Assembly (NCBI GenBank): GCA_025201805.1
Contig: MU619282.1
Coordinates: 154,540-218,539 of the forward strand
Length of the DNA: 64,000 bases
Source of the DNA: Parasitella parasitica NRRL 2501
Taxonomy: Eukaryota > Fungi > Mucoromycota
Reading direction: 5' to 3'
Of the stretch, positions 2,982 through 63,433 are shown piece by piece. How positions within the stretch are numbered: position 1 is the stretch's first letter; each line of letters begins with the position of its first letter. The notes below the pieces were generated by a model, which was given only the letters and a program-made list of their open reading frames with translations, did not search any database and was not told where the DNA came from. The position numbers and the translations under genes are program-made.

Positions 2982-3437
2982 CACATCGCATCTTTCTTCC
3001 CTACATTTTACCATCTCCAATACCCTCCTACTGCTCTCGCGTAGACACAAGTGGTAGAAGCCATTGGCATTTTCCTATTACTGCGTTACGTGTTTCACCT
3101 GCATACCCTGTTATTCGATACTCTATTCCTCAAAGCCCGTTTTTCTCTGCAAAGATCCAACATTTAGAATTTTTATGCCTTTAGAAAGAAAAAGCTACTA
3201 TGCTCTCTCCTACGCTTCTTATACTGATAGAGTAAATGAACTATGAGACCAAACGAAAGCCACAATATTAAGACCGTTAATAAAAAATAGCGCAAAGAGT
3301 AATTGCATATGTACCAACAAAAGAGATGGTTATGTTGTAAAAAAATTATATAGAAGAAAAAGAGGATGAGTTTCTGATAGAAATAAGCTTTATAGAGTTT
3401 CTGAATTTACCGAATATAGCCCTCATCGAGGGCAGGC

Positions 3438-6214: not shown

Positions 6215-7360
6215 TTCATTGATTGGCAGCTGTTTTTCTTCCTCTGTCCAGAAGCCATAAGTCTGCATCATTGGAGAACTTATCCCCCAACCTGTGTCCG
6301 AACTGTCCGTGGTGATTATGATCTTGGGCTTCTTTAGTTGAATTTTGTGGATGGGTAACCCGTTCTTCTTGGTTATGAACTACTTCCACCACATTAGCTC
6401 CTCCATTGCTAGTGTGGACAATTGACATCGGTCTTCCCAGTTGTAGTTCCGTTGAGTCAGGCTGATTGCCAAGCTCCTCTGTAAGTGGCGGATGTGCAAT
6501 AAGGCTTCGCCCACCGCAGGTAACATGGCGGTAATCTTCCCAAGTAGTCCAGCAATCCATCGGCAAGATCTTGTTATGGGCGAAAGTGCTTGTTTGATCT
6601 TTTGTATCAGCTTCTTGACCTTCAATTCCGGTACCTTGATCTTCATGGTTACTGTGTTGAATTGAAAACCCAGATATTCCTGTGTTTGGGATGGAGTCAG
6701 CATGCTTTTCCTCCGGTTGATAACGAATCCTAAGGACTCGAGATGATGTATTACCGTCTTTGTTATTTGTTCCAAATCCTTTGCGTCCCTTGATAGCAGA
6801 CAAATGTTCAAATAGTACACCAAACAGATTCCTTGTTTTCTTAACGGTTCGATGGCATGACGCAGTATTTTGGAAAAAATTCTTGGGGCTACATTTAATC
6901 CGAAATTTAGTGATTTGTATTGGTAAATTATGCCTTCGTTTTCGAACACTAAGAAAGGTTTGATTCTGGATGTATAGGTATTACGGTGTATGCGTCCTGC
7001 AAATCCAGCTTGACCATGTAGTCTCCTGATTCTATTAAATCTCTTAACGCCGGGACGCCTTCCATCTTGAAATGCTCCACCTGTATACATTGATTGATTC
7101 GGCGGCAACCCAGAATCGGGCGTCTCTTCGTTGCTTCCTGTAGTGTGAAGAACCTGGATAGGAAACCTCGTGATCGCGGGTTGTGGCATACTTCTATTAT
7201 TCACGCTGTAAGAAATTTGTTTACGGCAATGTTGATTTCGTCTTGCTCTTCTCTTGGAGTTGTAGTTCTTGGTAAGCGCCAAGGACTTGGTGTTTGAGCA
7301 AACTGAATTTGGTAACCTTCTTTGATAATCTTCAGTGGCCACGGATGTTGAACGATCTTT
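6215..7360 (-). mobile_element. DIRS/Ngaro-type retrotransposon RT-RNase H remnant
   Basis: YQYKSLNFGLNVAPRIFSK, degenerate YLDD (YYLNIC), KSMLTPSQTQEYLGF, EELMWWK, then in another frame the RNase H start TIITDSSDTGWG...GFWTEEEKQLPIN. Confidence 0.8.
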
Positions 7361-7409
7361 TGCCAATTGTGTAGACATCGAAAAGATCATTGACTTCGAT
7401 TCACCACCT

Positions 7410-8703
7410 ACCGTAATTCCAACAGTGGACACAACTATGGAAATCGACTCGCTTACGGAAAGCATAAAAGATTGTATCTATTGACGACGGTAGCAAAAAG
7501 TACAAGAAGTACACACCCGAGTAAGTGCGCATGTTCATACAGATAATGCAAGACGAAGGCACTACTGTACCTAAAGCGGCAGTACATTGTAACATTCCTC
7601 GACAAAGCGCTTACAGGCTGCTCAAGGAATTCAACGATAGCAACGGTAGTGTACTGTCTGGTTTTGCTCCGAAAGCCAAGAACAGAGGTACGAAACAAAA
7701 GCTTTTCGATCAGCATTCCCTGTTTTTGATTAATTACCACAAGTCTACAACACTTGGATTGGCCAAAGAAGTTCTTCCCAAGCAATTTCCAGACTTGGAA
7801 GATATTTCTATGCCTTCTCTGTGGAAGCATGTAACAGTAAATTGTGCTTTTTCGTTAAAAAGTGCATCTATATACAACGAAGAAAGAGACGCTGAACGAA
7901 CACTTCGCCTTTGCTGTGAGGTGGTAAGTAGATGGAAGGAAATTGGCGTCGACTTTAAAAAGAATTGCGTATTTGTAGATGAAGCAGGCTTTAATACGCA
8001 TATGATAAGAGGGCGAGCTTGGTCCAAAGTAGGAGAGCCAGCGAATGTTACTGTTCACAAGCAAAGAGGTGCTAATATCAGTATCGTTGGATGCATTGCG
8101 TATTTTGGAACAGTCATTTTTTCAAAAGTAGAGAGCCTTTAACAAAGGTAGCTGCAGAAAAGCTTGAACAAGAGTATGCAAACCCTGCCACCAAAAAAAG
8201 AAAAGCAAAAGACCCTGAGAAGAAAAAGCCTTTGAAAAAGGGAACCACGGCATATCATATTGTCAAGTTTTTGGAAGCAACAATGGAGACACTTGATAGG
8301 CACGACAAAAAGGGATTTTTCATAGTAATGGATAATTGTAGAATTTACCACTCTGCATTTGTTGCTGATGCTATTAATAAGAGAGGGTATAAACCTTTGT
8401 TCATGCCTCCTTACTCTCCTTTTTTAAACCCGATCGAAGAATGCTGGTCAAAAATAAAGAGCAATATCAAGAGAAACCCACTTGATAAAGCAGATAGTTT
8501 GACATCGCGTCTTCCTGGAGCTTGCGGATCTGTTACTGTTCAAGACTGCCAAGGTTGGATCAGACATGCTGAGATCTTCTGGGACAGGTGCATTAACAAA
8601 GAACTAGGATTAAGGTAAATATTATCACTGTATGTTATCTTTTTCTACATATTTAATCCCAAAATGAAAAAATTCGTCCCAACTTATGCGGTATCAAAAC
8701 CTG
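7410..8703 (+). mobile_element. Tc1/IS630-family DD34E transposon, 5'-truncated, frameshifted transposase (7525-8618)
   Basis: CVFVDEAGF, VMDNCRIYH...PPYSPFLNPIEECW; frameshift at ~8135; right end ...aaaacctg|TA at 8703. Confidence 0.88.
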
Positions 8704-8928
8704 TAGTGATAAAAAAAAAAAAGTTTTCAATGCAATGGACAGCGTATGACAGCTAAGCCTTACTTTGTTGTGATATTAAAATTGGCACAATAAATCAATT
8801 CTTTTCAATCATTGAGCTGCTTTCATTGCACAGACACGAGGCGATTTATTATAGATTCTGAGAAAGAAAAATTGAGATACTACAAAGGTATAAAATAAAA
8901 GTAGAAAGAGAACAATAATGGCTATTTT

Positions 8929-9843
8929 TTAGGATGAACTCTTGGGAGCAAGAGTAACAGCCAAAACTACGATAAGAATAATAATAATAATAACAGCAAT
9001 ACTAAAACAGATCCACTTTTTACGACGCATAGACATTGCAGATGTTTTCGCCTTTTCAACAAATTGAACACCTTGTTCCAAATTGGCAGTAGTTTCAAAC
9101 GCACTCTGCTCGATGGTATCCAGCACCTTGGACTGAGCATTCAACATAACTTGCATCTCTTCAAAGAGCAGAGACAGCTCTTGCACGCTTTTGGCCAAGC
9201 GTTTGATGTCCTCATGACGTTCTTGTACGGCATCCAAAGTGGTTTGAGCCTCGTGACGTCTATAATCGCCACTGACAGATTGAAGCAACTGTTGAGTAAA
9301 CACAGCACCTCCACCTTGCTCTGCATTAGCGATGGCTTTTTGAATGTCTTGGGAGGTGGCATTCGGATTAGCAATCTTAATTTGTCTTTCCAGCTGTCTC
9401 CCTTCTTCCTTTTGAAAGTTCAACGCAACTCTACGGTGATTTTCAATGGCATCCATAAAGGACTTTGTTACAGAGCTAAAGGCATTCTTTCTCATGGCCA
9501 GGTCGGTGTGTCGAGAGGTCGGTTCGATCTCTTTCAGCTTTTGTTTAACGTGTGTCATGATGTTTTGAGTGTCTGCGGTGAGTTGATCAAGTCGCTGACT
9601 AGAGTCGTCTCTAGCGTCAACAGTTTGAAGTATGCTCGATTGCAAGGAGCCGATAGCCTTGACGTTGACATTGATCTGGGTTATACTTTCCTTTACATGA
9701 GAGACTTGGTCAAGAAATCCCTCGACAGAAGTGATATCGCCAGTGGTTGACAAAAGGGGGCGCATCTCATAGCCTCCGCCTACATTCCGATCCGAGCTAC
9801 CATTGTTGTCTCTTTTGAGATCTGCAAGTCTATTTACGCTCAT
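8929..9843 (-). CDS. Plasma-membrane syntaxin (Sso1/2-like t-SNARE), intronless
   Basis: Habc helices, SNARE motif (VQERHEDIKRLAKSVQELSLLFEEMQ), RRKKWIC plus C-terminal TM helix; likely start MSVNRLADL. Confidence 0.93.
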   Translation of the reverse strand: MSVNRLADLKRDNNGSSDRNVGGGYEMRPLLSTTGDITSVEGFLDQVSHVKESITQINVNVKAIGSLQSSILQTVDARDDSSQRLDQLTADTQNIMTHVKQKLKEIEPTSRHTDLAMRKNAFSSVTKSFMDAIENHRRVALNFQKEEGRQLERQIKIANPNATSQDIQKAIANAEQGGGAVFTQQLLQSVSGDYRRHEAQTTLDAVQERHEDIKRLAKSVQELSLLFEEMQVMLNAQSKVLDTIEQSAFETTANLEQGVQFVEKAKTSAMSMRRKKWICFSIAVIIIIILIVVLAVTLAPKSSS

Positions 9844-10729
9844 TTGGTAGAGGAAAAAAAAGAAAAGAAAAAAAGGTAAAGGTGTGGAAGAGAGAAAGAA
9901 AAGAAAACGAGGCAAGACATTATTATTGTTATAAACAAATGTCGGGGTTGTGTGATAGACAATCTATTTATATTTCATTTCCTTTAGGCAAAAAAACAAG
10001 GGGCTCAGCCAAAAAGTGTTTATTTGAGTTTGATTAGCACTTTTGTACGTATCCAATTACATTAATCAAGGCAAAGCCAAGCACTCTTTTTATTGCTCTT
10101 TTTTTTATTGAAACACATTAAATCTTGCCTATGGATCTCTCAAGATATTTTTCTTACCCACCATTGCTCCGGTTGTTAGTAAACTGTGATTTTTTATTAT
10201 CAACATATCGGACAACCATCTCACTCTTTGTCCTGACAGATTGTAACAATATAAGCAAACAATAATAATAAAAACATCAGTGAAAGCTGTTAAACAAACC
10301 ATAAACCTTACAAAATAGACACACTAGACAGGCACATAGATCAAGTTAAGCGCCTATCCATACGTGTTATACGCTTAATATTGACTATAATTAATCTTGA
10401 TCGAGTTTACCACCATTCTTGCAGCAACATTCAGTAAGAATAGCGGGATTTGAATAGTGGAGATGGATTCCAGGAACAAAACCACAAAACACCCAATACA
10501 CATGATAAGGGTAGTTGGTGTATTAAGTACTCTCCAATTGATCAAAGTCATGAATTTTTTGATATTTACTTTCTTCTACTATCAATATGCCTCCTTTTCA
10601 GACTAGAAATTGCACAAGCTGCAAAATTTCTCTTCCTGAAACCTCTTCGTTCCGAAAATGTGATTCATGTAGTGTAAGTAAAAATTGTTTGCCGAGTAAA
10701 ACTGTAAATTGAGCAAACTTTTTTTTCAG

Positions 10730-11843
10730 GAACGTGCCCGAAACTAGGCCAGACATAGAGCTGCGTCAAGGCCGGCAGCACTCAGAGCACCCAGAGCACC
10801 CGCAGCTTTTGTTTCTGAATTGGCAAGAATGCGAACCTCTGATCTGGGAACGATGAATGTTGAATGTGATGGTTGTGGTGCCTTGCATTGGGAAGCAGAA
10901 AGAGCTACCAATCAAATGAGAAACGACAATTGCTTCTATGCTTGCTGTAAAAAAAGAAAGGCTATATTGCCCTTACTACAAGAACCGCCTGATCAACGGT
11001 AATCATCCACGCTCAGCGCATTGCTTGCAGCATACGAGACAGTACAACACTTTGTTTACGTTTACCTCATTTGGTGCTGACGCTACCCCTGAGCAACTTC
11101 AACGAGAGAGCCAAGAAGAAATCAGAGGTGGGATCATACTCGAATTCGTGTTCATGGAGAACTGTATCATATGCAAGCTCCTTTGAATTTGAACAACAGC
11201 CCAAAATACAACCAGCTGTATATTTATGATCCGGATTATTCTGCTGCAATTCGATCTGCAGATTAACGGAATGAAGGGTTAGACGAGACAATCATTGAAC
11301 AGTTGAGAGAGATGATTGCTAATCCAGATATTTGTGGCAACCCTTTCGTCCAAATATACAAGCACGCTCACGAAATTTTGAGAGAGGAAGAGGAGCGACA
11401 AGCCCAAAATGGTATCAACGAGGATGCTCACATCAGGCTCAATCCTCAGATGCGAATGGAGCTAATTGTTGGTGAAGACAGACGCACCCAAAATCTGCCA
11501 ACTGTCAACGAGATTGCGGCTATTATACCCAACGAATATGCTGACAGGAGTTTCAGAGATATTTTGATCACATATCGAAATAGCTCCTCCTCCAGTGCTC
11601 AGGGTCTTTTCAAAAGAATTAATGAAACGCATGCTGCCTATATGCCTCTTCATTATGTCTTGCTTTTCCCTAGAGACGAATATCCACAGTAGAGAGGGGT
11701 GGGGTGGGGGGGGGGGTTCAAGGGGGATACCTCCCCCCTGACTATTATGTAAACTTCTCCATTATCAATGCTTTATTGTAGTGTAAATTATATCTTCCCG
11801 CAGGGCGACGCCGTCATCGAGCGAAACGAGATCAAACGGCTAG
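10730..11843 (+). mobile_element. Helitron remnant: Rep N-terminal fragments plus 3' terminus
   Basis: MNVECDGCGALHW, ACC, QYNTLFTFTSFGA, NLPTVNEIAAII, AAYMPLHYVLLFP; terminal hairpin followed by CTAG|T at 11840-11844. The 5' boundary is not determined. Confidence 0.85.
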
Positions 11844-12421
11844 TAAAACTTAATACCGCCAAATGGAAATACCTTGGACATAAATAAGATATTGAAATCA
11901 GCCTCTGTTCCATGCAACGTCAATGTTTAATTATTTATCTCTAACGATATTATTGCAACAAAGCTTGAAAATTTCGACAAAATAACGAGGAAAGAAGGAA
12001 GCACCGTCATCAACAACAGTGGTGTTTTAGTTGCGGTGAGTGTAGGTTACTTTTCAAGCTGACTTGTCGTGGACCTTCAATTGTTTAGTCCAACCTGTAC
12101 AGTCAAACCTATGGAAATTGGCGTTTTCACAAAAATAATTGTCACTTTCATAAAAATGATTAACCGAAAGGCAAAAATAATTGGCGGAAATTGAAAAATA
12201 AATGTCACATGCTCAATTCTTTTTGTAATTTTGGCCAAGAATATTTGTCCATGCCAAGTAATTAAATTAGGCGGTTAAGTTACAATATTGTCCCTTTTCT
12301 TCGTTACTGAATTTTGTTATTTTTTTTTCTACTAAAAACATTTTCTAACAATGAGCACATTTTTTTATGAAGATGGACAAGACAACATTTATAATGAGCA
12401 AGGAGAAATCGTTACGATCCG

Positions 12422-13729
12422 ATGGAGGATGTTCTTACACAAATTGATGATCCGAATGTAATTCTTGAAACAATTACTAGCCAGAAAACCTATTTAAGTG
12501 TTAAACGCCTGGAGAAAACTGTTGAAGAGTCTCCTTCTAAAAAGCAACTGAAGACTAAAGTACCAGATTTGGATAGACCATACAAAAACTATAGCGACTT
12601 TACCAGAGAGACGTTTATAGATCGTATGATTGAAAAGCCTGAAGAACGTGGGTTGGTGACTAAGGTTGCAAATGACCTAAATATCAATTATCGCACTGCG
12701 TTAAGATGGTGGAATAGCTATAAAGAAACAGAGGAGATTCCATATAAGAAATCCGAAGAAAACAGTGGCCCTAAAAGCTCGTTCACTGCTAAACATAACG
12801 AGTATCTACAGGGTCTATTGGATAATGATCCTCAACTATTTTCGGATGATATTATGAAAAGCTTGACTGAACAATTTGAAGGCTTCACCATCTCAAAGTC
12901 GCAACTAAATAATCATTTACGTAATACAATGCTTATCACTATCAAGAAACCATTGTTTGAGCCTGAAATAAGAAATTCACCAGAAAACATGGAGACAAGA
13001 TTTGAGTGGTTTATGAAATGGAAGGACTCTAATCTTGATTTTACAAAGAATTGTGTTTTCATTGATGAAGCCGGATTTCACATTAACATGAGAAATAATT
13101 GGGCAAGATCAAAAAAGGGTAGCCCTGCTATAGTAAAACGACCAAAAACTAGAGCGATAACACATACTATTATTGGTGCTATCCATTCATCTAGTGTTGT
13201 TCATGTTGTGATGAAAAAACCTCCACCAAGAAAAGAAAAGCAATCTATTAGTAAAAAGAGAAAAGCTAATAGTGGAACAAAAAGAATTGTAGCTGAAGTT
13301 GATTTAGAGGATCCAGAGTTTGAAGATCCTACTGATAATAAACCAGTAGCAAAAGGCACGACTACTGCGCATTTCGTTAAATTCATGAATGCGCTTCTTG
13401 ATATAATGGACCTTGATGAAAATTTGAAGGGAAATTATATTGTAATGGATAACGCCTCATTTCATAAATCCAAGCCAATGATACGAAAAATCGAACGTAG
13501 AGGTTATAAAGTGATGTACTTACCTCCGTACTCACCTGAATTGAATCCTATTGAACAGTTCTGGGGAGTAGTCAAAGGCAAAATGAAGCGTGATCGATTA
13601 TTGGCTGAAGAAAATTTATCTGATCGAATTGCTGATGCCTGCAATGATGTCCTTATCAGCGACCTCTATGGTTTCTGTAATCACTCAAAACGTCAGATTA
13701 TTAAATGTTATAAAAAAACACCATTCTAA
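12422..13729 (+). CDS. Tc1/IS630-family DD34E transposase (left arm of element A)
   Basis: HTH region, FIDEAGF, MDNASFH-34aa-PIEQFW. Confidence 0.95.
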   Translation: MEDVLTQIDDPNVILETITSQKTYLSVKRLEKTVEESPSKKQLKTKVPDLDRPYKNYSDFTRETFIDRMIEKPEERGLVTKVANDLNINYRTALRWWNSYKETEEIPYKKSEENSGPKSSFTAKHNEYLQGLLDNDPQLFSDDIMKSLTEQFEGFTISKSQLNNHLRNTMLITIKKPLFEPEIRNSPENMETRFEWFMKWKDSNLDFTKNCVFIDEAGFHINMRNNWARSKKGSPAIVKRPKTRAITHTIIGAIHSSSVVHVVMKKPPPRKEKQSISKKRKANSGTKRIVAEVDLEDPEFEDPTDNKPVAKGTTTAHFVKFMNALLDIMDLDENLKGNYIVMDNASFHKSKPMIRKIERRGYKVMYLPPYSPELNPIEQFWGVVKGKMKRDRLLAEENLSDRIADACNDVLISDLYGFCNHSKRQIIKCYKKTPF

Positions 13730-14870
13730 TATATACATATACATTAAATAAACAATTATTTTTAAAACGGCAAACATATATGATTAACTCTAGCCCCAAA
13801 TTTAACTACTTGATATGGACACTTTTTAGAGATTCATTTGGTCTACAGTATTTTGTGTTTAAAAAATATAATGCTTGGTGGAACTAAATCTGTTTCGTAG
13901 ATCACTCCAATACAAACGTTTCAGAAGAGAGTATAATTGTTAGGCCATTAGTGAATGGGAACCTAACCCAAAGATAACAAGTCATCATTGCACTGTGGGG
14001 ACGGCAGTTTTTTTTTTTGGCGAGATGATCTTTGAATTAAACTGGGGCGAAATAGAGAATTAGGCTGGTATAACGTGTCCTTGGGGATAGAAAGAAGTGT
14101 TGCCTTTTAAGTAATTTTGAATAAAGCTTCCAAAGTAGAGGTATTTTAAATTTAATAAAAATTAAGTTTCTTAAAACAGCCCCAATGGAGTTGCTGTGTG
14201 GTTTCCTATTTCCAAATGAAAGAAGGGTTTTAATACTTCCTGCTTATTAAAAGTAATAGTAAAGGATTACTAGAATACTCAAAGCAACGTAAATGTGTTT
14301 TAGAATTCCTAATAGCGGTGCTTTCTTGTGCTAGCCATTTCTTTAAAGCAACTTAATAGCAATGGAAAATATAAAGAAAGGAGATAACGTATTATTTTAC
14401 TTTTTATACAAAAAAAAGAAATATTATCTGTTTTGATTGATCGTGGCCGCAAAAAAAATTAAGGTAATAGAATGCTGGAAGTATCAGCCGAAATACCATT
14501 CGTTAGTGAAGATTACCCAGAATGTGGCGCCAGTTTCAGATTTTCATTTAATAATGCCATAGCGAAGATCATGTTCGTCATAAAAGATTAATCACAATAG
14601 TCAGCTTGAAGTGTAACAAATGTAATAATGCCCTTAAAAATCATACTTTTTTTGCTAGAAAAGGACTTGACCTTGGCCTCAAAAGAAAGGAGGTTTGCAA
14701 AAAGCACAATAATAGATAAAACAGCCAAAGCGAGATATTGTGATTAGTAATTATGTAAACTGCCTTTCTCATATTTTTATGCTTACCAAACGTATGATCT
14801 AAAAAAGCCTAAAGGCAATGATCAATACCGTGATGAATACAAGGAGATAAAAAACCACCAGGTTTTACTG

Positions 14871-20469: not shown

Positions 20470-21234
20470 TTACCCTTCTTCTTTCTTCCATCACTTTTTA
20501 CCCTATGTACACAAACACATACGTTTGTACAAGCAGCCAGAATATTATGTACTCCTTAAAAAACGCTTCTTTTTTTTTGCAAATTTAATTTGTAAAATAA
20601 AAAAGTTTACCGTATCACCAATGTTTTTGTTGACTGTCAGCGATCTTTTTCTATTCTATTTATGCCCTATTGAGTTTTGACACTTAAAAATTGTGGTCTG
20701 ATCGGTGTGGGATAAATGAAATTGTCTAATAAAGTTAAAATTAAGTAAAGAAAAAAAAGTCGTCTTAGCCCATATATCTCAATGACTTTATCTCAATGAC
20801 TTTGAAATAGTCTCACGTTAGTTCAATCTCGTCTTAGTGTTGCATTAGTTTTTCTCAACCCTTCTGGGGAAACGTATGACAATTTTTTAAATTGTCTTTG
20901 TAAATTCTCTATTTCGCCCCAGTTTAATTCAAAGATCATCTCGCCAAAAAAAAAAACTGCCGTCCCCACAGTGCAATGATGACTTGTTATCTTTGGGTTA
21001 GGTTCCCATTCACTAATGGCCTAACAATTATACTCTCTTCTGAAACGTTTGTATTGGAGTGATCTACGAAACAGATTTAGTTCCACCAAGCATTATATTT
21101 TTTAAACACAAAATACTGTAGACCAAATGAATCTCTAAAAAGTGTCCATATCAAGTAGTTAAATTTGGGGCTAGAGTTAATCATATATGTTTGCCGTTTT
21201 AAAAATAATTGTTTATTTAATGTATATGTATATA

Positions 21235-22542
21235 TTAGAATGGTGTTTTTTTATAACATTTAATAATCTGACGTTTTGAGTGATTACAGAAACCATAGAG
21301 GTCGCTGATAAGGACATCATTGCAGGCATCAGCAATTCGATCAGATAAATTTTCTTCAGCCAATAATCGATCACGCTTCATTTTGCCTTTGACTACTCCC
21401 CAGAACTGTTCAATAGGATTCAATTCAGGTGAGTACGGAGGTAAGTACATCACTTTATAACCTCTACGTTCGATTTTTCGTATCATTGGCTTGGATTTAT
21501 GAAATGAGGCGTTATCCATTACAATATAATTTCCCTTCAAATTTTCATCAAGGTCCATTATATCAAGAAGCGCATTCATGAATTTAACGAAATGCGCAGT
21601 AGTCGTGCCTTTTGCTACTGGTTTATTATCAGTAGGATCTTCAAACTCTGGATCCTCTAAATCAACTTCAGCTACAATTCTTTTTGTTCCACTATTAGCT
21701 TTTCTCTTTTTACTAATAGATTGCTTTTCTTTTCTTGGTGGAGGTTTTTTCATCACAACATGAACAACACTAGATGAATGGATAGCACCAATAATAGTAT
21801 GTGTTATCGCTCTAGTTTTTGGTCGTTTTACTATAGCAGGGCTACCCTTTTTTGATCTTGCCCAATTATTTCTCATGTTAATGTGAAATCCGGCTTCATC
21901 AATGAAAACACAATTCTTTGTAAAATCAAGATTAGAGTCCTTCCATTTCATAAACCACTCAAATCTTGTCTCCATGTTTTCTGGTGAATTTCTTATTTCA
22001 GGCTCAAACAATGGTTTCTTGATAGTGATAAGCATTGTATTACGTAAATGATTATTTAGTTGCGACTTTGAGATGGTGAAGCCTTCAAATTGTTCAGTCA
22101 AGCTTTTCATAATATCATCCGAAAATAGTTGAGGATCATTATCCAATAGACCCTGTAGATACTCGTTATGTTTAGCAGTGAACGAGCTTTTAGGGCCACT
22201 GTTTTCTTCGGATTTCTTATATGGAATCTCCTCTGTTTCTTTATAGCTATTCCACCATCTTAACGCAGTGCGATAATTGATATTTAGGTCATTTGCAACC
22301 TTAGTCACCAACCCACGTTCTTCAGGCTTTTCAATCATACGATCTATAAACGTCTCTCTGGTAAAGTCGCTATAGTTTTTGTATGGTCTATCCAAATCTG
22401 GTACTTTAGTCTTCAGTTGCTTTTTAGAAGGAGACTCTTCAACAGTTTTCTCCAGGCGTTTAACACTTAAATAGGTTTTCTGGCTAGTAATTGTTTCAAG
22501 AATTACATTCGGATCATCAATTTGTGTAAGAACATCCTCCAT
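21235..22542 (-). CDS. Tc1/IS630-family DD34E transposase (right arm of element A)
   Basis: Protein identical to 12422-13729. Confidence 0.95.
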   Translation of the reverse strand: MEDVLTQIDDPNVILETITSQKTYLSVKRLEKTVEESPSKKQLKTKVPDLDRPYKNYSDFTRETFIDRMIEKPEERGLVTKVANDLNINYRTALRWWNSYKETEEIPYKKSEENSGPKSSFTAKHNEYLQGLLDNDPQLFSDDIMKSLTEQFEGFTISKSQLNNHLRNTMLITIKKPLFEPEIRNSPENMETRFEWFMKWKDSNLDFTKNCVFIDEAGFHINMRNNWARSKKGSPAIVKRPKTRAITHTIIGAIHSSSVVHVVMKKPPPRKEKQSISKKRKANSGTKRIVAEVDLEDPEFEDPTDNKPVAKGTTTAHFVKFMNALLDIMDLDENLKGNYIVMDNASFHKSKPMIRKIERRGYKVMYLPPYSPELNPIEQFWGVVKGKMKRDRLLAEENLSDRIADACNDVLISDLYGFCNHSKRQIIKCYKKTPF

Positions 22543-22866
22543 CGGATCGTAACGATTTCTCCTTGCTCATTATAAATGTTGTCTTGTCCATCTTCATAAA
22601 AAAATGTGCTCATTGTTAGAAAATGTTTTTAGTAGAAAAAAAAATAACAAAATTCAGTAACGAAGAAAAGGGACAATATTGTAACTTAACCGCCTAATTT
22701 AATTACTTGGCATGGACAAATATTCTTGGCCAAAATTACAAAAAGAATTGAGCATGTGACATTTATTTTTCAATTTCCGCCAATTATTTTTGCCTTTCGG
22801 TTAATCATTTTTATGAAAGTGACAATTATTTTTGTGAAAACGCCAATTTCCATAGGTTTGACTGTA

Positions 22867-23755
22867 CCTGGCAATAAAAAGAGAAAGGTTTGTTTAGTTT
22901 ATAACTTTGACCTATCCTAACTATTAAATATCATTACATGTTATTTTAAAGATCTCAAATATCAACCAGGATGGATGTTGGACGATTAATAGCGATGAAG
23001 AATTCTGGGATAGCTGGAGAGAATATCTTGAAGGTTGTGATTGCCACGAGTTTTGGTAAGCCTATAGAACATTGGAGGATAAGCCTTATCCATAATTCAT
23101 TTGTTTTCTAATTTAGCCTGGAGAAAGATCACGTAATTGAATGTGGTTACACCATCAAGTGCAAGCCAAGCTATGACCAAGACCTTTATCACCAACTTGG
23201 TGATTATACAACACAATTAGTAAAGTCACCATTCATGACTCATAGCAGCTACCCCTCTCAAGTAATCAAAGCTTTCATGAGGTAGATATTAGGCGTCAAC
23301 TATTTCTATTCCCATTCTAAAGCTATTTTTATCAAGGGAAAGGAAAGAGCCATTTTAAAAGCTTTATCGTGTGATGCACATTGGGAGTTGATTGAGGGAT
23401 CTAATCCAACTGCAAAATATGCTTATGACTATTTTCAGTTTATGTAATTATTGAATCTATTTTGATAAGATGAAATATTGTGCATTTTTTCTATAGGTAT
23501 ACGTATCAAATCAGTAACAATTCCCGTAATCGAGTTTTGCCCTGGTGAATTATTACTGGCTTCGGCAGATGAAGATTACAAAGCTGATGGCCTTATAAAG
23601 TTCGATGGCATGGAGATGTGTCTTTTAGAGACATCAGGAAAGTATGACCTCGTTGACTCGCCGAGGTTTGGTTTCGACAACATTAAAGGTTCGTTTGGTT
23701 GTCTTATGTTTCTACGTAATTTGTTGAAGATTTGGTATTTCGCCAAATTAAGTAC
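22867..23755 (+). pseudogene. Spliced PD-(D/E)xK-like gene remnant, interrupted by element A and truncated by a Helitron
   Basis: Exons reading FWDSWREYL..CHEF / LEKDHVIECG and DYKADGLIKFDGMEMCLLETSG..FGFDNIKGSFG. Confidence 0.6.
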
Positions 23756-54837: not shown

Positions 54838-56498
54838 CCTTATATGTGTTTTTGCGAATTACTAAATTTGTGGTATATAGGGGCATCCTTAGGAATTAGC
54901 TTTCTTTACTGCTAGTGTCTGGTGCAACATTGCGAACTACAACCACCATATAAATGCCACCCTCTCCATTGTTATCGTACCCTTCTCTCATTTTTACCAA
55001 TAATCTCAATTGGTATGAATAATAACATTTAAAGTTGGTTGATATGTTAAACTAGAAATCACGGTCTACAATTGCCCTCAAAAGAAACTCCTCAAATTAA
55101 ATCTTATAATAAAAGGACCTAGGGTTTGATCAAGTCTTTTGAAATCACAAGCGTCATAGCAAATGATAGTATGCCAAAGCGTCTCTTCCTCAAGACAGGA
55201 GTTCAAAAACAACAATTCCGTATTTACGGTCTGATGCTAAGGCTTATATATTGGGCAAAGATGAAAGCGACGGGATACATGTACGAACGCTCCTCTGCAC
55301 AGCTCAAATGGCTTACCACAGTCGTTTTTGCCAACCACGTAAGGTGGGTGTCGACAACAGCATCTTTTTTGGTGTTGTTACTTTTTTGGGATCAGATGAA
55401 CTTCTACCTTCTCGTGGTTGATCCTGTTAATCATTATAACTTAACAGTTATTTTGAGAACTAAAAGAAGTTTCAGTCTATTTGCATTTATATTAATAATC
55501 AATGAATAAATAAAAATGTTTTGTAAATTACATCTTGACTTTTTAGTTTCTTGTAAATGCTTTTTTTTCAATGCTTGCAATAATAACGGGGTTTTATAGA
55601 GATTCTTTAGGGCTCTCTGAATTGAAGCAGCTGCAGTATTTATGATAGAACTTGCGAATATTGTGCTGGTCTCTTCATCAATCTTGAGTTTTGAAGTAGA
55701 GTTTGCGATGGTAATCCTAAAGCTCAGGTTCTAGATGCAGTTGCTTCACATTAAGAAATTTGAAGTGTTAATTCTAACCTCATACTCTGTACAGTATCAA
55801 ATAAAGAAGTTGTGTTCTTTGTCCTCTGGTTTTTTATAGTAAACTGAAAGCTAATAGCATAACATTAAGAATCAACGGAATCTTTCTCAAGATATTTTAT
55901 TTTGTAATCGTCCATGATCAAATAGTTAAATTGAAAGGTTTTGTCCTTGATGTTCATCGTGCCCTTTGATGATCTGTCATCTACTGTTACTTTTAATGTT
56001 GCTGCTGATGTTTTTCATGCTGTTGTTCTTTCCGTTGTTCTTTCTGTTGTTGTTGCTTTTGCTGTGCCCTTTCCACCTCGCTTTCACATTTATGCTTATG
56101 ATAATGCTGGTTACAGCCCATCCGGCAAAACAAAGCAAAGAAAATAATAAGTGCATTATCCTTACAACAATTCATAATTTCTTTTTTGTTACCTTTCATA
56201 CAATAGCCGCTCGATTTAAGGCTGTTCGATATAAGGCTATTCACGATATAAGGCTAAAATTTTTGTGAATTTTTTTTTTAAGCAGGGAGTTAGCCTTATT
56301 AGCCTTATTCGATAACAGTGCTCACGGTACCAATTTGCGGTTTTATATTTTTTTTTGCGGGTTTACAAACTTCCAATTTGCGGGTTTTTCATTGGCCAAT
56401 TTGCGGTTTTTTTATTCTCACTTTACGGGTTTGCTAGATCCCAATTAGCGTTTTTATTTTTTCAATTTACGTTTTACTTTACAAAATAAACAGCTATT

Positions 56499-57833
56499 AT
56501 GTTTTCAATTTCAGGCAAGATCATCTTCGAAGATGGCCAAGGAAATCTCTATAATGAGGATGGAAAAGAGGCAATGGACTGGGAAGAAGATGTAGATCCC
56601 TACAATTTAGAAAACCTAACTAACTTGACTCAGTATAAAGAACATCAACCAGTTGAATTAGATTCAAATGATCCCGCTTTGGATAAACGAATGGAAGACA
56701 TTCAAACCAAAGTTTCAACGGGAAATACTGCAGTTAAATACAAAACATATTCCGTTGACCAAAAAACTTTGTTTTTGTATTATATTAAGATCAAACTTTT
56801 TAAAGCTGCAAAAGCTGCAAAATTGTCTGGAGTAAACGAACGCACTGGACAGCAATGGGCGAAAAGACTTAGGGAAGATCCTGAATGGGATATATATGAA
56901 AAAAACACGAACAAAGTTAACCGAAAATCCAGTCAGCTTCAAGAGGAGCATAAGCTGTATTTGATAAACTACTTTGATGAGTTTTCTCAGGCACGCACAA
57001 AAGACGCAGTAGATAGTTTGACTGAAAACTTCGAAAACTTTAGTTTAAAAGAAACAGTCGTTGGAGAGTTTATCTCAAGGGAGTGCAATCTTTCTATCAA
57101 GAGCGTAACCCGTCACCCTAAAGCTCGAAATAGCCCAGAGAAGCTTAAAGCTCGTCGTGAGTGGGTAGAGTTATGGTCTGAAACCTCAATGGATTTTAAT
57201 ACCAATTGCATTTTCATCGATGAAAGTGCTTTTGATATAAACATGAGGCCACCTACTGCAAGATCGGTTAGAGGAACACCGGCTGTTGTTGTCACGCCTT
57301 CTACTAAGGCTATTAGCCATACTATTCTTGGTGCTGTTTCTGCATTGGGAATAATAAACATTGAGATACGAGTTCCAGTACCACCAAAAAAAGTAAAAGT
57401 AGTAGGTAGCCGTAAAAGAAAATCAACTGCTGTAAAGAAGCCTTCTTTTGGAGGAACTAATTCCGGTCACTACCTTAATTTTATTAAGAAAACTCTCGAT
57501 CAAATGGATAAATATCCTGAGATGAAAGGATTTTATCTCATTATGGATAACTCTCCTATTCATGATAAGAAAGACGGTGATATTGACAATATTATTGAAT
57601 CTAGAGGCTATAAATGTGTTTATCTTCCTCCTTATTCCCCAGAACTTAACCCCATTGAGCAGTTCTGGGCAGTAGTTAAGAGTAAAGTTAGAAGAAGCCA
57701 GTTTGGGAACACTGAGGATCTTAAGACCAGGATCAGTGAAGCATGTAATGAAATTCCTTTCAAACATCTTCAAGGTTTTGTTAAACACTCATTCGATACT
57801 TTTGAAAGATGTTTGAACGAGGAACATATATAA
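56499..57833 (+). CDS. Tc1/IS630-family DD36E transposase (left arm of element B)
   Basis: FIDESAF, MDNSPIH-36aa-PIEQFW. Confidence 0.95.
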   Translation: MFSISGKIIFEDGQGNLYNEDGKEAMDWEEDVDPYNLENLTNLTQYKEHQPVELDSNDPALDKRMEDIQTKVSTGNTAVKYKTYSVDQKTLFLYYIKIKLFKAAKAAKLSGVNERTGQQWAKRLREDPEWDIYEKNTNKVNRKSSQLQEEHKLYLINYFDEFSQARTKDAVDSLTENFENFSLKETVVGEFISRECNLSIKSVTRHPKARNSPEKLKARREWVELWSETSMDFNTNCIFIDESAFDINMRPPTARSVRGTPAVVVTPSTKAISHTILGAVSALGIINIEIRVPVPPKKVKVVGSRKRKSTAVKKPSFGGTNSGHYLNFIKKTLDQMDKYPEMKGFYLIMDNSPIHDKKDGDIDNIIESRGYKCVYLPPYSPELNPIEQFWAVVKSKVRRSQFGNTEDLKTRISEACNEIPFKHLQGFVKHSFDTFERCLNEEHI

Positions 57834-58740
57834 AAAAAAATATTTTAATAAAACGTAATTTGAAAAAATAAAAACGCTAATTGGGATCTAGCAAACCCGT
57901 AAAGTGAGAATAAAAAAACCGCAAATTGGCCAATGAAAAACCCGCAAATTGGTACCGTGAGCACTGTACATCTTTTTGGCAACTTATTTGTCACTTTTCT
58001 TGATGAAATAGAATATACAGTGAATCCATTTTCACATTGCGAACTAGCTGAAAATTTTCATACATGTGACGAAGTTAAATCCAATCAAATGCAGAAATAA
58101 GCTTTTTACTAAAATACAGTCCGGCTGGTGGACATTGTCGGTTACAAGAAAGATAACTGGATTTAATTTGTTAATTAATATAAAAACAATTGTCGGTCAA
58201 ATACGAATAAAATATAATAAGAGGAAAAGATGCTGCTAGGCTTAATTCATAGTGATTAGCCATGATTTAACTAACAGAATCATACAGTGTTTCGGTTTTC
58301 GTTAAAATTAATAGATATTTATTCAATTACAAGCTTTGTCAAGACACTTCTTCAACTGAATTTAGAAAAATAAATAAAAAATTTAAGCCATAACTTATAA
58401 TTATCATTGCAAAAAGCTATATAATAAACCCAAGTACAAACTGTTTGGGCGTAAAATGTCACAAAGATCTATGGTCGCTTACGAATGAACGTTTTTGATA
58501 ATTTTATATGCTATTTTTATAGATGCTATACAACTGTGGTCACGGAGAAAATTCATAGCGTGTCTTTCCAATACTTTAATGTTTTACCATAAATATACAT
58601 ATACTATTATTAATATTAGAGAACATATTAAATGAAATAATTTATTTTTGTGATATAAATTTAACAGCAAACAAATAGTGTTTCTCTTAACAATAAGAAT
58701 AATATTCGTTGTGAGAGGACTTAAAATGATAAACGAAGCA

Positions 58741-59595
58741 TTAAAAATCCTCTAATCGTCTTAACTTTTTCTGTAATACCTCAACCTCCTGTAATTTTCT
58801 TTCGATTTGTTTTTTAATTTTTGATTTAGCCTTTTCAATATCCTCGTTATAGTCGTCACTTGTACTAATAATAGTAGAAGCTGTCGTATTTGGATTGGTA
58901 TTTGTTGATGTTGTACTAGATTCATGATTATTTGCATCAATTGTAGAAATGACAGGCGTATCGACGTTACGGTTGCTTGGATTGGTATTTGTTGATGCTG
59001 TACTAGATTCATGATTATTTGCATCAGTTTTAGAAATGACAGGCGTATCGACGTTACGGTTACTTGGATTGGCATTAGATGTTGAATTGTTGCTGAAACT
59101 TGCGGTGGAATCATTGCTAATGTTAGTGCCAAGAGCGATAGAGCAATGGCACATCAATTTTGAGGATGAGCTAATTCGTGGTTGTACTTGAAAATTACTC
59201 TAAATAAGAATGTTAAGTATACTCTAATTTCACTTAATAGTAAATAGTGAAGCCTTACATAATTAATAGGCTTGTTATCTAATAGACTTGGGTTTACTCC
59301 TATTCCTTCAAGTCTTTTGCATATAAGCTTTTTCTGAATACAATAAACATAGTAAAAAGTCGAAGCATCAAGTTCAGATTCGAAATGAATGAGCGCAAAG
59401 CTACTATCAAAAGTTAAATCTTAGTCAAATACTGTGATATTTTGCTTACTTTTTTTGCTCCGTTTTGATAACATGTAGGGGCTTAACAATAGAACATTCT
59501 TTCAGAATTTGTTTTAATCGTTCACTTTTGATGCCTGTTATGCTATCACCACAAAGCTGAACGTGGCATTTTCTGTTACCACACGTCTCGCACAT
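58741..59595 (-). CDS. Cargo gene of element B: ~248-aa protein with Cys-rich N-terminus, RRM-like domain, S/T/N-rich repeats and C-terminal coiled coil; 3 exons
   Basis: Exons 59595-59450, 59400-59259, 59199-58741 splice in frame (GT-AG): MCETCGNRKCHVQLCG..SERLKQILKEC..KNFALIHFESELDAS. Confidence 0.75.
58893..59072. repeat. Two coding 87-bp tandem repeats
   Basis: NPSNRNVDTPVIS(KT/TI)DANNHESST(A/T)STNT occurs twice. Confidence 0.9.
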
Positions 59596-59887
59596 GAAAG
59601 AAATCTGTGGGAAAGCAAAAAAAAATTAATTTTTTTTTTTTTAAATGAGTTTTATTTGTCGCACGTAAAGATGGACTTACAGACCATCAGAAGCGGTGCT
59701 CAACAATGTGAAAATATGGATAAGGATAATTATACTGAAAAGAAAAAGATAAAATAAATCTAAGATAATAGCGCGAGGAGAAAAAAAATTAATGTAGTTT
59801 TGTTCTTGCTATTTCACAAGACTGTAACTCAAAATAAGTGATGACGTAATTAAATTAATTTTATTTATAGTGACCTAGCGTTTTTTT

Positions 59888-60032
59888 TTACTTTCGTGGT
59901 AGGCATTTTTTTATTTCTTTTGAGTCATCTTTCGTGGGTGGCATTAGGTTTACTTTCGTGGTAGACATTTTTTTATTTCTTTTGGGTCATCTTTCGTGGG
60001 TAGCATTAGGTTTACTTTCGTGGTAGACATTT
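59888..60032. repeat. ~61-bp tandem repeat containing five CTTTCGTGG motifs, upstream of the RRM-like gene
   Basis: tttactttcgtggtag.cattttttt..gtcatctttcgtggg..gcattagg, ~2.3 copies. Confidence 0.85.
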
Positions 60033-61122
60033 TGGATATGAATTGCTAATCACCTCCTCGTGGTCATATCTGGACAACTACTATTTCTATGGAAGTAGTA
60101 GGCTAAGTATTAGCATTTTGATTAGTTTAGCGCTTTTTTTTTTTAAATAAAGTTTATTGGTTATTGTTAGAGTTAGAAAGACAAATGATTGCTTACAAAC
60201 ATATGATTTTGGTAATTTTATATATACTGTTTTTATAGACGCTATACAACTGTGGTCATGGAGAAAATCCACAGCATGTCTTTCCAATGCTTTAATGTTT
60301 TACCACACATAAAATGGGAAGGTTCAAAAGTCCAGAATTTCTTTTTTACAGTAGTGTCTATACTTAATATATTAGGCACAGCGTCTCATTGCTAAATTAT
60401 TTCAGGGGTCAAGAATGAGTGCAGAGAAATGAATAGTAAAATTTATTTTATAATCCTTACGCTAGTCTTTTAATTACTTCTTCAGATCCATTTTTTACAT
60501 TTTACGCCCAAACAGTTTGTACTTGGGTTTATTATATAGCTTTTTGCAATGATAATTATAAGTTATGGCTTAAATTTTTTATTTATTTTTCTAAATTCAG
60601 TTGAAGAAGTGTCTTGACAAAGCTTGTAATTGAATAAATATCTATTAATTTTAACGAAAACCGAAACACTGTATGATTCTGTTAGTTAAATCATGGCTAA
60701 TCACTATGAATTAAGCCTAGCAGCATCTTTTCCTCTTATTATATTTTATTCGTATTTGACCGACAATTGTTTTTATATTAATTAACAAATTAAATCCAGT
60801 TATCTTTCTTGTAACCGACAATGTCCACCAGCCGGACTGTATTTTAGTAAAAAGCTTATTTCTGCATTTGATTGGATTTAACTTCGTCACATGTATGAAA
60901 ATTTTCAGCTAGTTCGCAATGTGAAAATGGATTCACTGTATATTCTATTTCATCAAGAAAAGTGACAAATAAGTTGCCAAAAAGATGTACAGTGCTCACG
61001 GTACCAATTTGCGGGTTTTTCATTGGCCAATTTGCGGTTTTTTTATTCTCACTTTACGGGTTTGCTAGATCCCAATTAGCGTTTTTATTTTTTCAAATTA
61101 CGTTTTATTAAAATATTTTTTT

Positions 61123-62457
61123 TTATATATGTTCCTCGTTCAAACATCTTTCAAAAGTATCGAATGAGTGTTTAACAAAACCTTGAAGATGTTTGAAAGG
61201 AATTTCATTACATGCTTCACTGATCCTGGTCTTAAGATCCTCAGTGTTCCCAAACTGGCTTCTTCTAACTTTACTCTTAACTACTGCCCAGAACTGCTCA
61301 ATGGGGTTAAGTTCTGGGGAATAAGGAGGAAGATAAACACATTTATAGCCTCTAGATTCAATAATATTGTCAATATCACCGTCTTTCTTATCATGAATAG
61401 GAGAGTTATCCATAATGAGATAAAATCCTTTCATCTCAGGATATTTATCCATTTGATCGAGAGTTTTCTTAATAAAATTAAGGTAGTGACCGGAATTAGT
61501 TCCTCCAAAAGAAGGCTTCTTTACAGCAGTTGATTTTCTTTTACGGCTACCTACTACTTTTACTTTTTTTGGTGGTACTGGAACTCGTATCTCAATGTTT
61601 ATTATTCCCAATGCAGAAACAGCACCAAGAATAGTATGGCTAATAGCCTTAGTAGAAGGCGTGACAACAACAGCCGGTGTTCCTCTAACCGATCTTGCAG
61701 TAGGTGGCCTCATGTTTATATCAAAAGCACTTTCATCGATGAAAATGCAATTGGTATTAAAATCCATTGAGGTTTCAGACCATAACTCTACCCACTCACG
61801 ACGAGCTTTAAGCTTCTCTGGGCTATTTCGAGCTTTAGGGTGACGGGTTACGCTCTTGATAGAAAGATTGCACTCCCTTGAGATAAACTCTCCAACGACT
61901 GTTTCTTTTAAACTAAAGTTTTCGAAGTTTTCAGTCAAACTATCTACTGCGTCTTTTGTGCGTGCCTGAGAAAACTCATCAAAGTAGTTTATCAAATACA
62001 GCTTATGCTCCTCTTGAAGCTGACTGGATTTTCGGTTAACTTTGTTCGTGTTTTTTTCATATATATCCCATTCAGGATCTTCCCTAAGTCTTTTCGCCCA
62101 TTGCTGTCCAGTGCGTTCGTTTACTCCAGACAATTTTGCAGCTTTTGCAGCTTTAAAAAGTTTGATCTTAATATAATACAAAAACAAAGTTTTTTGGTCA
62201 ACGGAATATGTTTTGTATTTAACTGCAGTATTTCCCGTTGAAACTTTGGTTTGAATGTCTTCCATTCGTTTATCCAAAGCGGGATCATTTGAATCTAATT
62301 CAACTGGTTGATGTTCTTTATACTGAGTCAAGTTAGTTAGGTTTTCTAAATTGTAGGGATCTACATCTTCTTCCCAGTCCATTGCCTCTTTTCCATCCTC
62401 ATTATAGAGATTTCCTTGGCCATCTTCGAAGATGATCTTGCCTGAAATTGAAAACAT
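61123..62457 (-). CDS. Tc1/IS630-family DD36E transposase (right arm of element B)
   Basis: Protein identical to 56499-57833. Confidence 0.95.
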   Translation of the reverse strand: MFSISGKIIFEDGQGNLYNEDGKEAMDWEEDVDPYNLENLTNLTQYKEHQPVELDSNDPALDKRMEDIQTKVSTGNTAVKYKTYSVDQKTLFLYYIKIKLFKAAKAAKLSGVNERTGQQWAKRLREDPEWDIYEKNTNKVNRKSSQLQEEHKLYLINYFDEFSQARTKDAVDSLTENFENFSLKETVVGEFISRECNLSIKSVTRHPKARNSPEKLKARREWVELWSETSMDFNTNCIFIDESAFDINMRPPTARSVRGTPAVVVTPSTKAISHTILGAVSALGIINIEIRVPVPPKKVKVVGSRKRKSTAVKKPSFGGTNSGHYLNFIKKTLDQMDKYPEMKGFYLIMDNSPIHDKKDGDIDNIIESRGYKCVYLPPYSPELNPIEQFWAVVKSKVRRSQFGNTEDLKTRISEACNEIPFKHLQGFVKHSFDTFERCLNEEHI

Positions 62458-63433
62458 AATAGCTGTTTATTTTGTAAAGTAAAACGTAAATTGAAAAAAT
62501 AAAAACGCTAATTGGGATCTAGCAAACCCGTAAAGTGAGAATAAAAAAACCGCAAATTGGCCAATGAAAAACCCGCAAATTGGAAGTTTGTAAACCCGCA
62601 AAAAAAAATATAAAACCGCAAATTGGTACCGTGAGCACTGTAAGGCTCTTATTTTACAGTAAATTGACGGTATTTAAATTTGTGTTGTGTTGGAAACTGA
62701 GCATTATGCTACAGATTTCGTACTTTTGCTCGATAGTGAGACGCTCTCTTGATTGTTGATTAATGCTTATAGTATAATTGTTTGTCAAAATATGCTTTTT
62801 TAAGAATAAAGAACTAAATGAATTTGACTGGACATGTGTCAAATTAATCTAATAGCTGTAGTACCGTATCAACTATGCATGTGACTGTTTTAAGAGTAAT
62901 AGTCACATGCACGATATAAGGCTATGTAATAATTGTGGCTTACGAACGATATAAGAATAACTCAGATAACAGACCAGATAATTGTTATGATGCAATCATA
63001 TAATATACTGTATCCGTATAACCACTCAAAAAAATTAAATAAACATATCCAATCAGAAAAATAGAATACCCATTGGCTGATATGGTTTTTGAGTTACTGA
63101 AAATGGATAGACTTCCCCTTTGGGAAAAAAAGATCAAATTTACCTTTTATTTCAATATTTTTCTCAAATTAAAGGTGCCCTGGAGAGACTTGAGGGCCTT
63201 TATGAGAGTCTCTCAACTGTTTTTGATATTTTGTAGATATACCAAGGTAGAGTGTTAATTGTATATCTTACTGATATTGAGGAATAAATAAATCGAAACA
63301 AGTAGCTTTCGATATATAATTTATTGTCTGACAAATTATATGAATTGCATGTTAAGAGCAAAAAAAAAAAGAGGCATATGTAAGTATTAATTATTTTTTG
63401 AAATAGTTTATATTGTAAATGTTATAAATATTA

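Follow-up and report, generated by a model that had tools for sequence, protein, structure and literature searches.

How does a gene come to lie between two complete, mirror-image copies of the same transposon? Members of the Tc1/mariner superfamily are the most widespread DNA transposons. Two of them, identical and inverted, enclose a small gene in the pin mould Parasitella parasitica NRRL 2501, a parasite that fuses with other Mucorales, within a 64,000-nucleotide stretch of contig MU619282.1 (assembly GCA_025201805.1, 32.8 Mb). This stretch, C46:154540-218539 in our contig numbering, is called the window below. Either two elements inserted independently on both sides of the gene, or both arms stem from one event. 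A literature search on mirrored Tc1 pairs in Mucorales found no paper. New for the structure described here, composite B, are the single origin of its arms, their reading as unequal copies, the identity of the flank that they share and the comparison with Mucor circinelloides.

Overall architecture of composite B

By direct base comparison, positions 56315-58459 are the exact reverse complement of 60497-62641 (2145 of 2145 bases), with the neighbouring base at either end mismatched. A mismatch-tolerant repeat search returned slightly longer arms of 2151 nt (56315-58465 and 60491-62641), with two mismatches within the six extra bases. A perfect inverted repeat of 2.1 kb cannot have arisen by chance. 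Each arm consists of one complete Tc1-like element of 1651 bp (element B), a TA dinucleotide and 491 bp of DNA from outside the element; the spacer between the arms, S, measures 2037 bp. From tip to tip the block is 6325 bp (about 6.3 kb) long, and the structure ends 1.36 kb before the end of the contig. The original prediction, made from the letters alone, had the same 493 bp following both 3' tips. The direct comparison bears this out to the base, 57967-58459 being the reverse complement of 60497-60989, TA included.

Table 1. Features of composite B and of composite A, in window positions.
Feature	Position	Strand	Remarks
Composite A arms	12097-14061 / 20903-22867	+ (first arm)	1965 bp, 100% identical; tip-anchored, starting with CAGTC after TA
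Left outer flank	56213-56315	.	Array of CGAT[A/T]TAAGGCT motifs in both orientations; ends ...TCGATAA beside the tip
Left copy of element B	56316-57966	+	Complete, 1651 bp; tips CAGTGCTCACGG... / CAGTGCTCACGGTACC... at both ends
Outer (5') terminal inverted repeat	56316-56476	+	About 44 bp extra relative to the inner repeat
Transposase ORF, intact	56499-57833	+	444 aa; D241, D350, E387; 36 residues between the second D and E
Inner (3') terminal inverted repeat, left copy	57849-57966	+	Shorter form, from repeat comparison
Flank F	57967-58459	+	TA + 491 bp; duplicated in both arms; full length only at the B locus genome-wide
J2, probable fusion junction of short and long arm	58459/58460 (58455-58464)	.	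D4a starts at most 5 bp away
Spacer S	58460-60496	.	Single copy apart from the MITE; interpreted as the surplus of the longer arm, running on into F' at 60496/60497
D4a	58460-58595		Direct repeat of D4b, 81-88% identical; repeat length 136-140 bp
Passenger gene	58744-59625	-	Three exons (about 59625-59449, 59420-59262, 59199-58744) from six-frame reading; layout matches P0121
MITE	59623-59782	.	About 150-160 bp, upstream of the passenger gene; more than 15 genome copies; absent from the M. circinelloides locus
D4b	60172-60311	+	Continues leftwards into M. circinelloides-homologous DNA
F' (mirror copy of flank F)	60497-60989	-	From direct comparison
Right copy of element B	60990-62640	-	Identical to the left copy; transposase ORF 61123-62457
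Right outer flank	62641-62923	.	TAAGGCT directly at the tip; further GATATAAGGCT at 62913

Element B and its relatives

The transposase of element B matches the Pfam family DDE_3 (PF13358) with an E-value of 3.6e-21, and with D241, D350 and E387 present its catalytic triad is intact. This triad, the CAGTG-type tips and the TA target duplication place the element, by sequence, in Tc1/mariner (IS630-Tc1-mariner). In Mucorales, 378 relatives of the transposase were found, of which three close ones likewise have 444 residues. The closest relatives share 81-88% protein identity, and the DNA of three of them was compared. A single copy in H. pulchrum (L069), 86.6% identical to B at the DNA level, is bounded by TA-CAGTG...CACTG-TA; with a second copy from that species and one from M. 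saturninus included, the single copies are 83-87% identical to B and have identical tip endpoints. The three relatives (two from H. pulchrum and one from M. saturninus) contain no homology to flank F in their DNA. These copies, which end at the tips, rule out that F belongs to the family of B. The original prediction was open to the objection that the 493 bp are an ordinary part of single copies; the flank is absent from those in H. pulchrum and M. saturninus. Its claim that the arms are not two independent insertions stands with this result, since related elements in other species stop at their tips and lack the 493 bp.

The composite has the longer 5' repeat at its two outer ends and the shorter 3' repeat at its two inner ends. 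Because the H. pulchrum copy has the longer form at both ends, the shorter inner repeat of B must be derived. Other members of the family in the P. parasitica assembly are fragmentary and at most 84% identical. An exact look-up of the B transposase in public assemblies gave no record, and Tc1-B was not found in M. circinelloides protein sets, where the best match is 56%. No mirrored partners were seen around three further relatives (Circinella minor, one JGI metagenome), on short-read contigs that carry little weight.

Foldback elements have long arms made of short subrepeats, usually with no Tc1-type transposase inside the arms. Composite B was considered as such an element and rejected, as each of its arms holds a complete Tc1 with an intact ORF together with unique DNA.

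The shared flank and an older Tc1 family

A palindrome on contig C51 has both arms 83-92% identical to bases 1-212 of F, and this homology ends exactly at the TA adjoining the 3' tip of B. The outer 125 bp of the C51 arms start with a tip and subterminal motifs resembling those of element A, the other composite in the window (TA followed by CAGTCAGGC...). Bases 148-369 of F are also present on contigs C57 and C10, where they lie antisense to A-like transposase remnants and directly downstream of them; bases 213-493 are absent from the C51 arms. Judged by these matches, F from base 1 to about 370 is the 3' subterminal region of a different, older (A-like) Tc1 family, and B had inserted into an element of this family, 125 bp from its tip. 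The portion of the older element that should follow beyond the opposite end of B is missing; therefore, B and F would have moved away from it together. Spacer S was searched for transposase remnants of the older element and none were found. The flank had originally been described as donor DNA. It does lie outside the family of B, but it is part of another Tc1 family rather than anonymous host DNA.

The C51 palindrome itself (L065:3120-6254, corresponding to C51:52119-55253) is interrupted in the middle by a 2.46-kb transposon, of which more than 15 copies with 95-99% identity exist.

Spacer and fusion junction

The inner boundaries of the two arms differ. Since D4a starts within 5 bp of the left boundary and D4b continues leftwards past its repeat unit, we read 58459/58460 as the break that cut the repeat and 60496/60497 as native. 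The fusion point of the arms is thus most likely 58459/58460, as far as the repeat structure tells. Measured from the tip, the two copies are then 2145 and 4182 bp long. Identical arms can recombine and flip S, so neither outer flank is assignable to the short or to the long copy. Tc1-tip-like pseudo-ends were not seen at the inner arm boundaries. The MITE next to the passenger gene has no counterpart in the homologous M. circinelloides DNA and must therefore have inserted after the lineages split.

The passenger gene and its relative in M. circinelloides

Pfam searches with the three passenger exons, each queried separately, found no family; the 'RRM-like' label given to the gene earlier was not confirmed. 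The last exon has 15 relatives, the best being P0121 of M. circinelloides (215 aa, 89% identity), the gene for which has a perilipin-like gene on one side and chorismate synthase on the other, in a contig of 3.2 Mb (L075, GCA_973907015.1). At the DNA level, positions 58471-60269 of S are 94.8% identical to L075 over the gene and its 3' flank and 96.6% over the upstream non-coding part. In P. parasitica, the perilipin-like and chorismate synthase genes are adjacent on contig C28, with a gap of 988 bp as against 1908 bp in L075. These neighbour genes are 81-83% identical to their L075 counterparts in DNA and further syntenic genes 73-74%. The passenger gene is absent from the syntenic C28 site, and its only other trace in the genome is a fragment with 37% protein identity on contig C124. 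The gene had been predicted to be captured, and this agrees with finding its nearest relative in an ordinary chromosomal locus of M. circinelloides and no copy at the corresponding site here.

Two genes on the contig of composite B served as controls. The syntaxin at 8932-9915 has 87% protein identity to Parasitella parasitica and at most 79% to Mucor species and the M. circinelloides group, and the kinase tail 5 kb to the left of composite B has 35% protein identity to M. circinelloides. By the syntaxin alone, Parasitella is the nearest named relative. Judged by these identities, the passenger is far too similar to M. circinelloides for vertical descent. Because its DNA is closer to that species than the rest of the genome is, the comparison suggests that the block or its cargo crossed between species, the capture having taken place in another species or the block having come from one.

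Passenger homologues in M. fragilis and M. hiemalis are about 40% identical and lie in unrelated contexts. The M. circinelloides locus (L075:9772-11356) is itself a small inverted duplication, in which the 3' end of the gene (10674-10833) is mirrored at 10913-11073 with 98% identity, and the unit is bracketed by inverted repeats of 86 bp (9772-9857 and 11060-11145). With such unrelated contexts and an inverted duplication in M. circinelloides, the gene unit is restless in several species. Within the last passenger exon there is an 87-bp tandem duplication (58890-59063, 95% identity), which repeats a 29-residue block rich in Asn, Ser and Thr. The M. fragilis homologue contains many more repeats of Asn/Ser/Thr-rich blocks; it is part of a 3.4-kb tandem duplication (L076:1-3419 and 6761-10184, 99.85%), with a long array of repeats of about 50 bp between the copies.

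Insertion site of the block

The 11-mer GATATAAGGCT occurs three times in the window (56228, 56245 and 62913), always beside the composite and on both sides of it. This distribution suggests that the two outer flanks were once adjacent and that the block landed between them as a unit. The target duplication is imperfect: on the left, TCGATA-A precedes the tip, leaving an A, and on the right the tip is followed by TA-AGGCT, giving TA.

The nearest relative of the neighbouring kinase (L078, 79% DNA identity) has an upstream gene that is not in the window and is too diverged to display the insertion site. Neither an empty site nor a second copy of the composite was found; composite B is single-copy in the assembly. 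The original prediction proposed looking for a donor locus, a single Tc1 followed by the 493 bp. When the assembly was searched with F, element B and S, no such locus appeared, the B locus being the sole match, and a metagenome scan for sequence joining the 3' tip of B to F gave no match. The donor may belong to a different species.

Element A and other inverted Tc1 pairs

Palindromes were examined at sequence level in six cases. The arms of composite A run about 240 bp past the point, some 1725 bp in, that corresponds to the 3' inverted repeat of a related copy on contig C83; these 240 bp have no other match in the genome. Comparison with the C83 copy thus upholds the earlier observation that A duplicates about 240 bp beyond a remnant of its terminal repeat. 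On contig C66, arms of 1472-1473 bp differ by seven mismatches (99.5% identity). The left arm lacks the final 72 bp of the element at the 3' tip, and the right copy is complete, with 3' repeat and tip, and continues into a 5.6-kb spacer. Its seven mismatches in 1473 bp mark C66 as an older, real event. The palindromes A, B and C66 are all anchored at the 5' tip of a Tc1 element and have arbitrary inner ends, from 72 bp before the 3' tip in C66 to 493 bp past it in B. In B, C66 and C51 the outer limits deviate from the Tc1 tip by no more than one base, and in A and C120 by no more than 3-5 bases.

The outer dinucleotides are CA and TA in C66, GA and TA in C51, and TA on both sides in A and C120. 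In three of the five tip-anchored palindromes, NA (AA, CA or GA) at one tip stands opposite TA at the other, as if one T of the target were missing. These asymmetric junctions are at window positions 56314-56316 and 62640-62642, at 728-730 and 9320-9322 in C66 (L067), and at 3119-3121 and 6253-6255 in C51 (L065).

In a genome-wide census of DDE_3 matches, at least nine inverted pairs have equal scores and lie no more than 10 kb apart, and one further inverted pair (C45) has diverged. Convergent orientation, as in A and B, is found in eight of these ten. The census showed no pair of identical copies in direct orientation. The pairs on C128, C25, C38, C14, C30, C29 and C45 were judged by coordinates and scores only. 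Arm identity is 99.5% in C66, 98.9% in C69 and 91-97% in C51, where the arms differ by 3-9%. The divergence of the arms at these three sites argues for a real class of palindromes, of varied ages, and against a product of assembly.

The C69 palindrome (L066:3062-3595 and 6582-7116) is of a different kind from A, B and C66: its arms, 534 bp long, come from the interior of a B-like transposase gene, are divergent in orientation and lack tips. Identical DDE_3 matches also occur at the same or similar offsets on separate contigs (C182:2305-2520 and C225:2305-2520; C121:97321-97527 and C152:72120-72326), which may be duplicated contigs or uncollapsed haplotypes.

Origin of the arms

For maize Ac, composite insertions have been described in which alternative transposition at the time of replication gives two unequal inverted copies of the same 5' terminus, fused at their broken ends and sometimes including donor flank (Wang et al., bioRxiv 10.1101/2020.01.07.897926). 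Composite B has the same terminus at both borders, as well as unequal arms with arbitrary ends and donor flank. We consider it somewhat probable that both arms derive from one Tc1-B copy and the DNA on its 3' side through alternative transposition of the maize type. The original prediction had proposed this model; the anatomy matches that in maize, but the mechanism is deduced from sequence, the TA duplication is imperfect (A against TA) and the assembly holds no donor.

In the donor genome, B would have been located inside the remnant of the older Tc1 element, about 0.7 kb from the small gene. During or after replication, the transposase would have engaged two copies of the same 5' end, on sister chromatids or at a re-replicated end, instead of a 5' and a 3' end. 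The two copies would then have been extended or broken at unequal distances from the tip, 2145 and 4182 bp, and joining of the broken ends at 58459/58460 would have given a block bounded by 5' tips that both point outwards, in which the surplus of the longer copy became the gene-bearing spacer. This block would have been placed as a unit into a TA within the local motif array; the intact site would read ...TCGATATAAGGCT.... Weakened 3' ends may have contributed, the inner repeat of B being about 44 bp short and that of A lost, which would favour pairing of 5' with 5' ends. With its outer tips and both transposase ORFs intact and its inner repeats shortened, the B block may still be mobile as a single unit.

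Two separate cut-and-paste insertions of element B on either side of the gene would explain that both copies are complete and that TA is present at each inner end. However, 493 bp of identical, mirrored DNA that is not part of the element are common to both copies and cannot be produced in that way, and we reject this explanation as next to impossible. Assembly error is also very improbable. The arms are 100% identical and the structure is close to the end of the contig, as might be expected of a chimeric or folded read giving a false mirror, but a fold-back read would neither contain a unique spacer of 2 kb nor begin at a transposon tip, and about ten such pairs exist in the genome, those on C66, C69 and C51 with diverged arms. 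The mirror might also have formed in place, without transposase, by a template switch in replication or a fold-back, in which a fork or broken end copied its own DNA in reverse. Such events typically leave inverted duplications around a unique spacer, and weak residual similarity is present just inside the arms (58460-58470 against 60484-60496). Against this, the outer limits coincide with Tc1 tips in B, C66, C51, A and C120, apart from the small offsets given above; a rare motif is common to both outer flanks, as if they were once adjacent; and the cargo is foreign to the local chromosomal neighbourhood. We regard formation in place as quite unlikely.

The alternative that we consider least improbable, although still unlikely, starts from a pre-existing F-S-F' palindrome of the older Tc1 family. 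B would have inserted into one end of it, arm-to-arm repair would have copied B across, and the B transposase would then have moved the inner block from the outer tips. The similarity of F 1-212 to both C51 arms, which start with an A-like Tc1 tip, fits such a history, and so does the end of this homology exactly at the TA beside the 3' tip of B. It is at odds with several observations: the outer 125 bp of the older element are missing on both sides of B, bases 213-493 of F are not found in the C51 arms, and those arms differ by 3-9% where F and F' are identical. C66 has the same design with no homology beyond its truncated arm. The start of D4a at J2 is left unexplained, and three steps are needed. 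Alternative transposition from a single Tc1-B copy is retained as the preferred reading.

With the shared flank, what looked like two transposons around a gene becomes one copying accident anchored at a transposon tip. Such an origin would account for the pairs always being inverted, for their arbitrary inner ends and for neighbouring genes as passengers. If true at some ten sites, Tc1/mariner elements have a natural route by which host genes can be captured and moved. That the passenger is 95-97% identical to another Mucor species suggests that they are also able to export genes. We put forward, tentatively, that same-end transposition of Tc1 elements is recurrent in P. parasitica, that it builds self-mobile, gene-capturing 'sandwich' blocks, and that at least the B block brought a chromosomal gene of the M. 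circinelloides lineage into this genome. On a small scale, this would be a eukaryotic equivalent of the way in which bacterial composite transposons transduce genes.

Comparison with known systems

Mucorales have a strong RNAi system, and an intact transposase gene in arms mirrored perfectly over 2.1 kb is an obvious candidate hairpin-RNA trigger for it. In maize, Mu killer, an inverted duplication of a partial MuDR element, silences its family. Like Mu killer, composite B is an inverted duplication of a transposon with adjacent DNA that could yield hairpin RNA; by this analogy, silencing is possible for B.

Bacterial composite transposons (Tn5 and Tn10; also the IS630 family) resemble B in that inverted IS-like copies bracket passenger DNA and can move bacterial cargo. 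They arise by two separate insertions, whereas the shared flank points to a single duplicative origin of B. Classification of B as a classical composite transposon, with independent insertions and unrelated inner flanks, was rejected on the identity of the 493-bp inner flank.

The engineered Sleeping Beauty 'sandwich' vector, in the account of it given in PMC4229213, consists of two complete inverted elements around a cargo, the inner ends being disabled by a defined mutation (Zayed et al. 2004). As described there, it shares with B a Tc1-type pair inverted around cargo and weakened inner ends that favour use of the outer ones. B differs from the vector of that account in being natural, in having inner repeats that are merely about 44 bp short, and in that its mobility as a unit is a prediction.

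A close counterpart in design is that of maize Ac/Ds, where composite insertions come from sister-chromatid or reversed-ends transposition with re-replication (Zhang and Peterson; Wang et al.). Ac/Ds are hAT elements with perfect 8-bp duplications, and their alternative transposition has been demonstrated genetically, with reciprocal products; B, in contrast, is a fungal Tc1/mariner structure with an imperfect duplication, for which the same route is proposed from sequence. In both systems the same terminus is present in inverted orientation, the copies are of unequal length and fused at their breaks, donor flank can be included, and the product lies at a new site.
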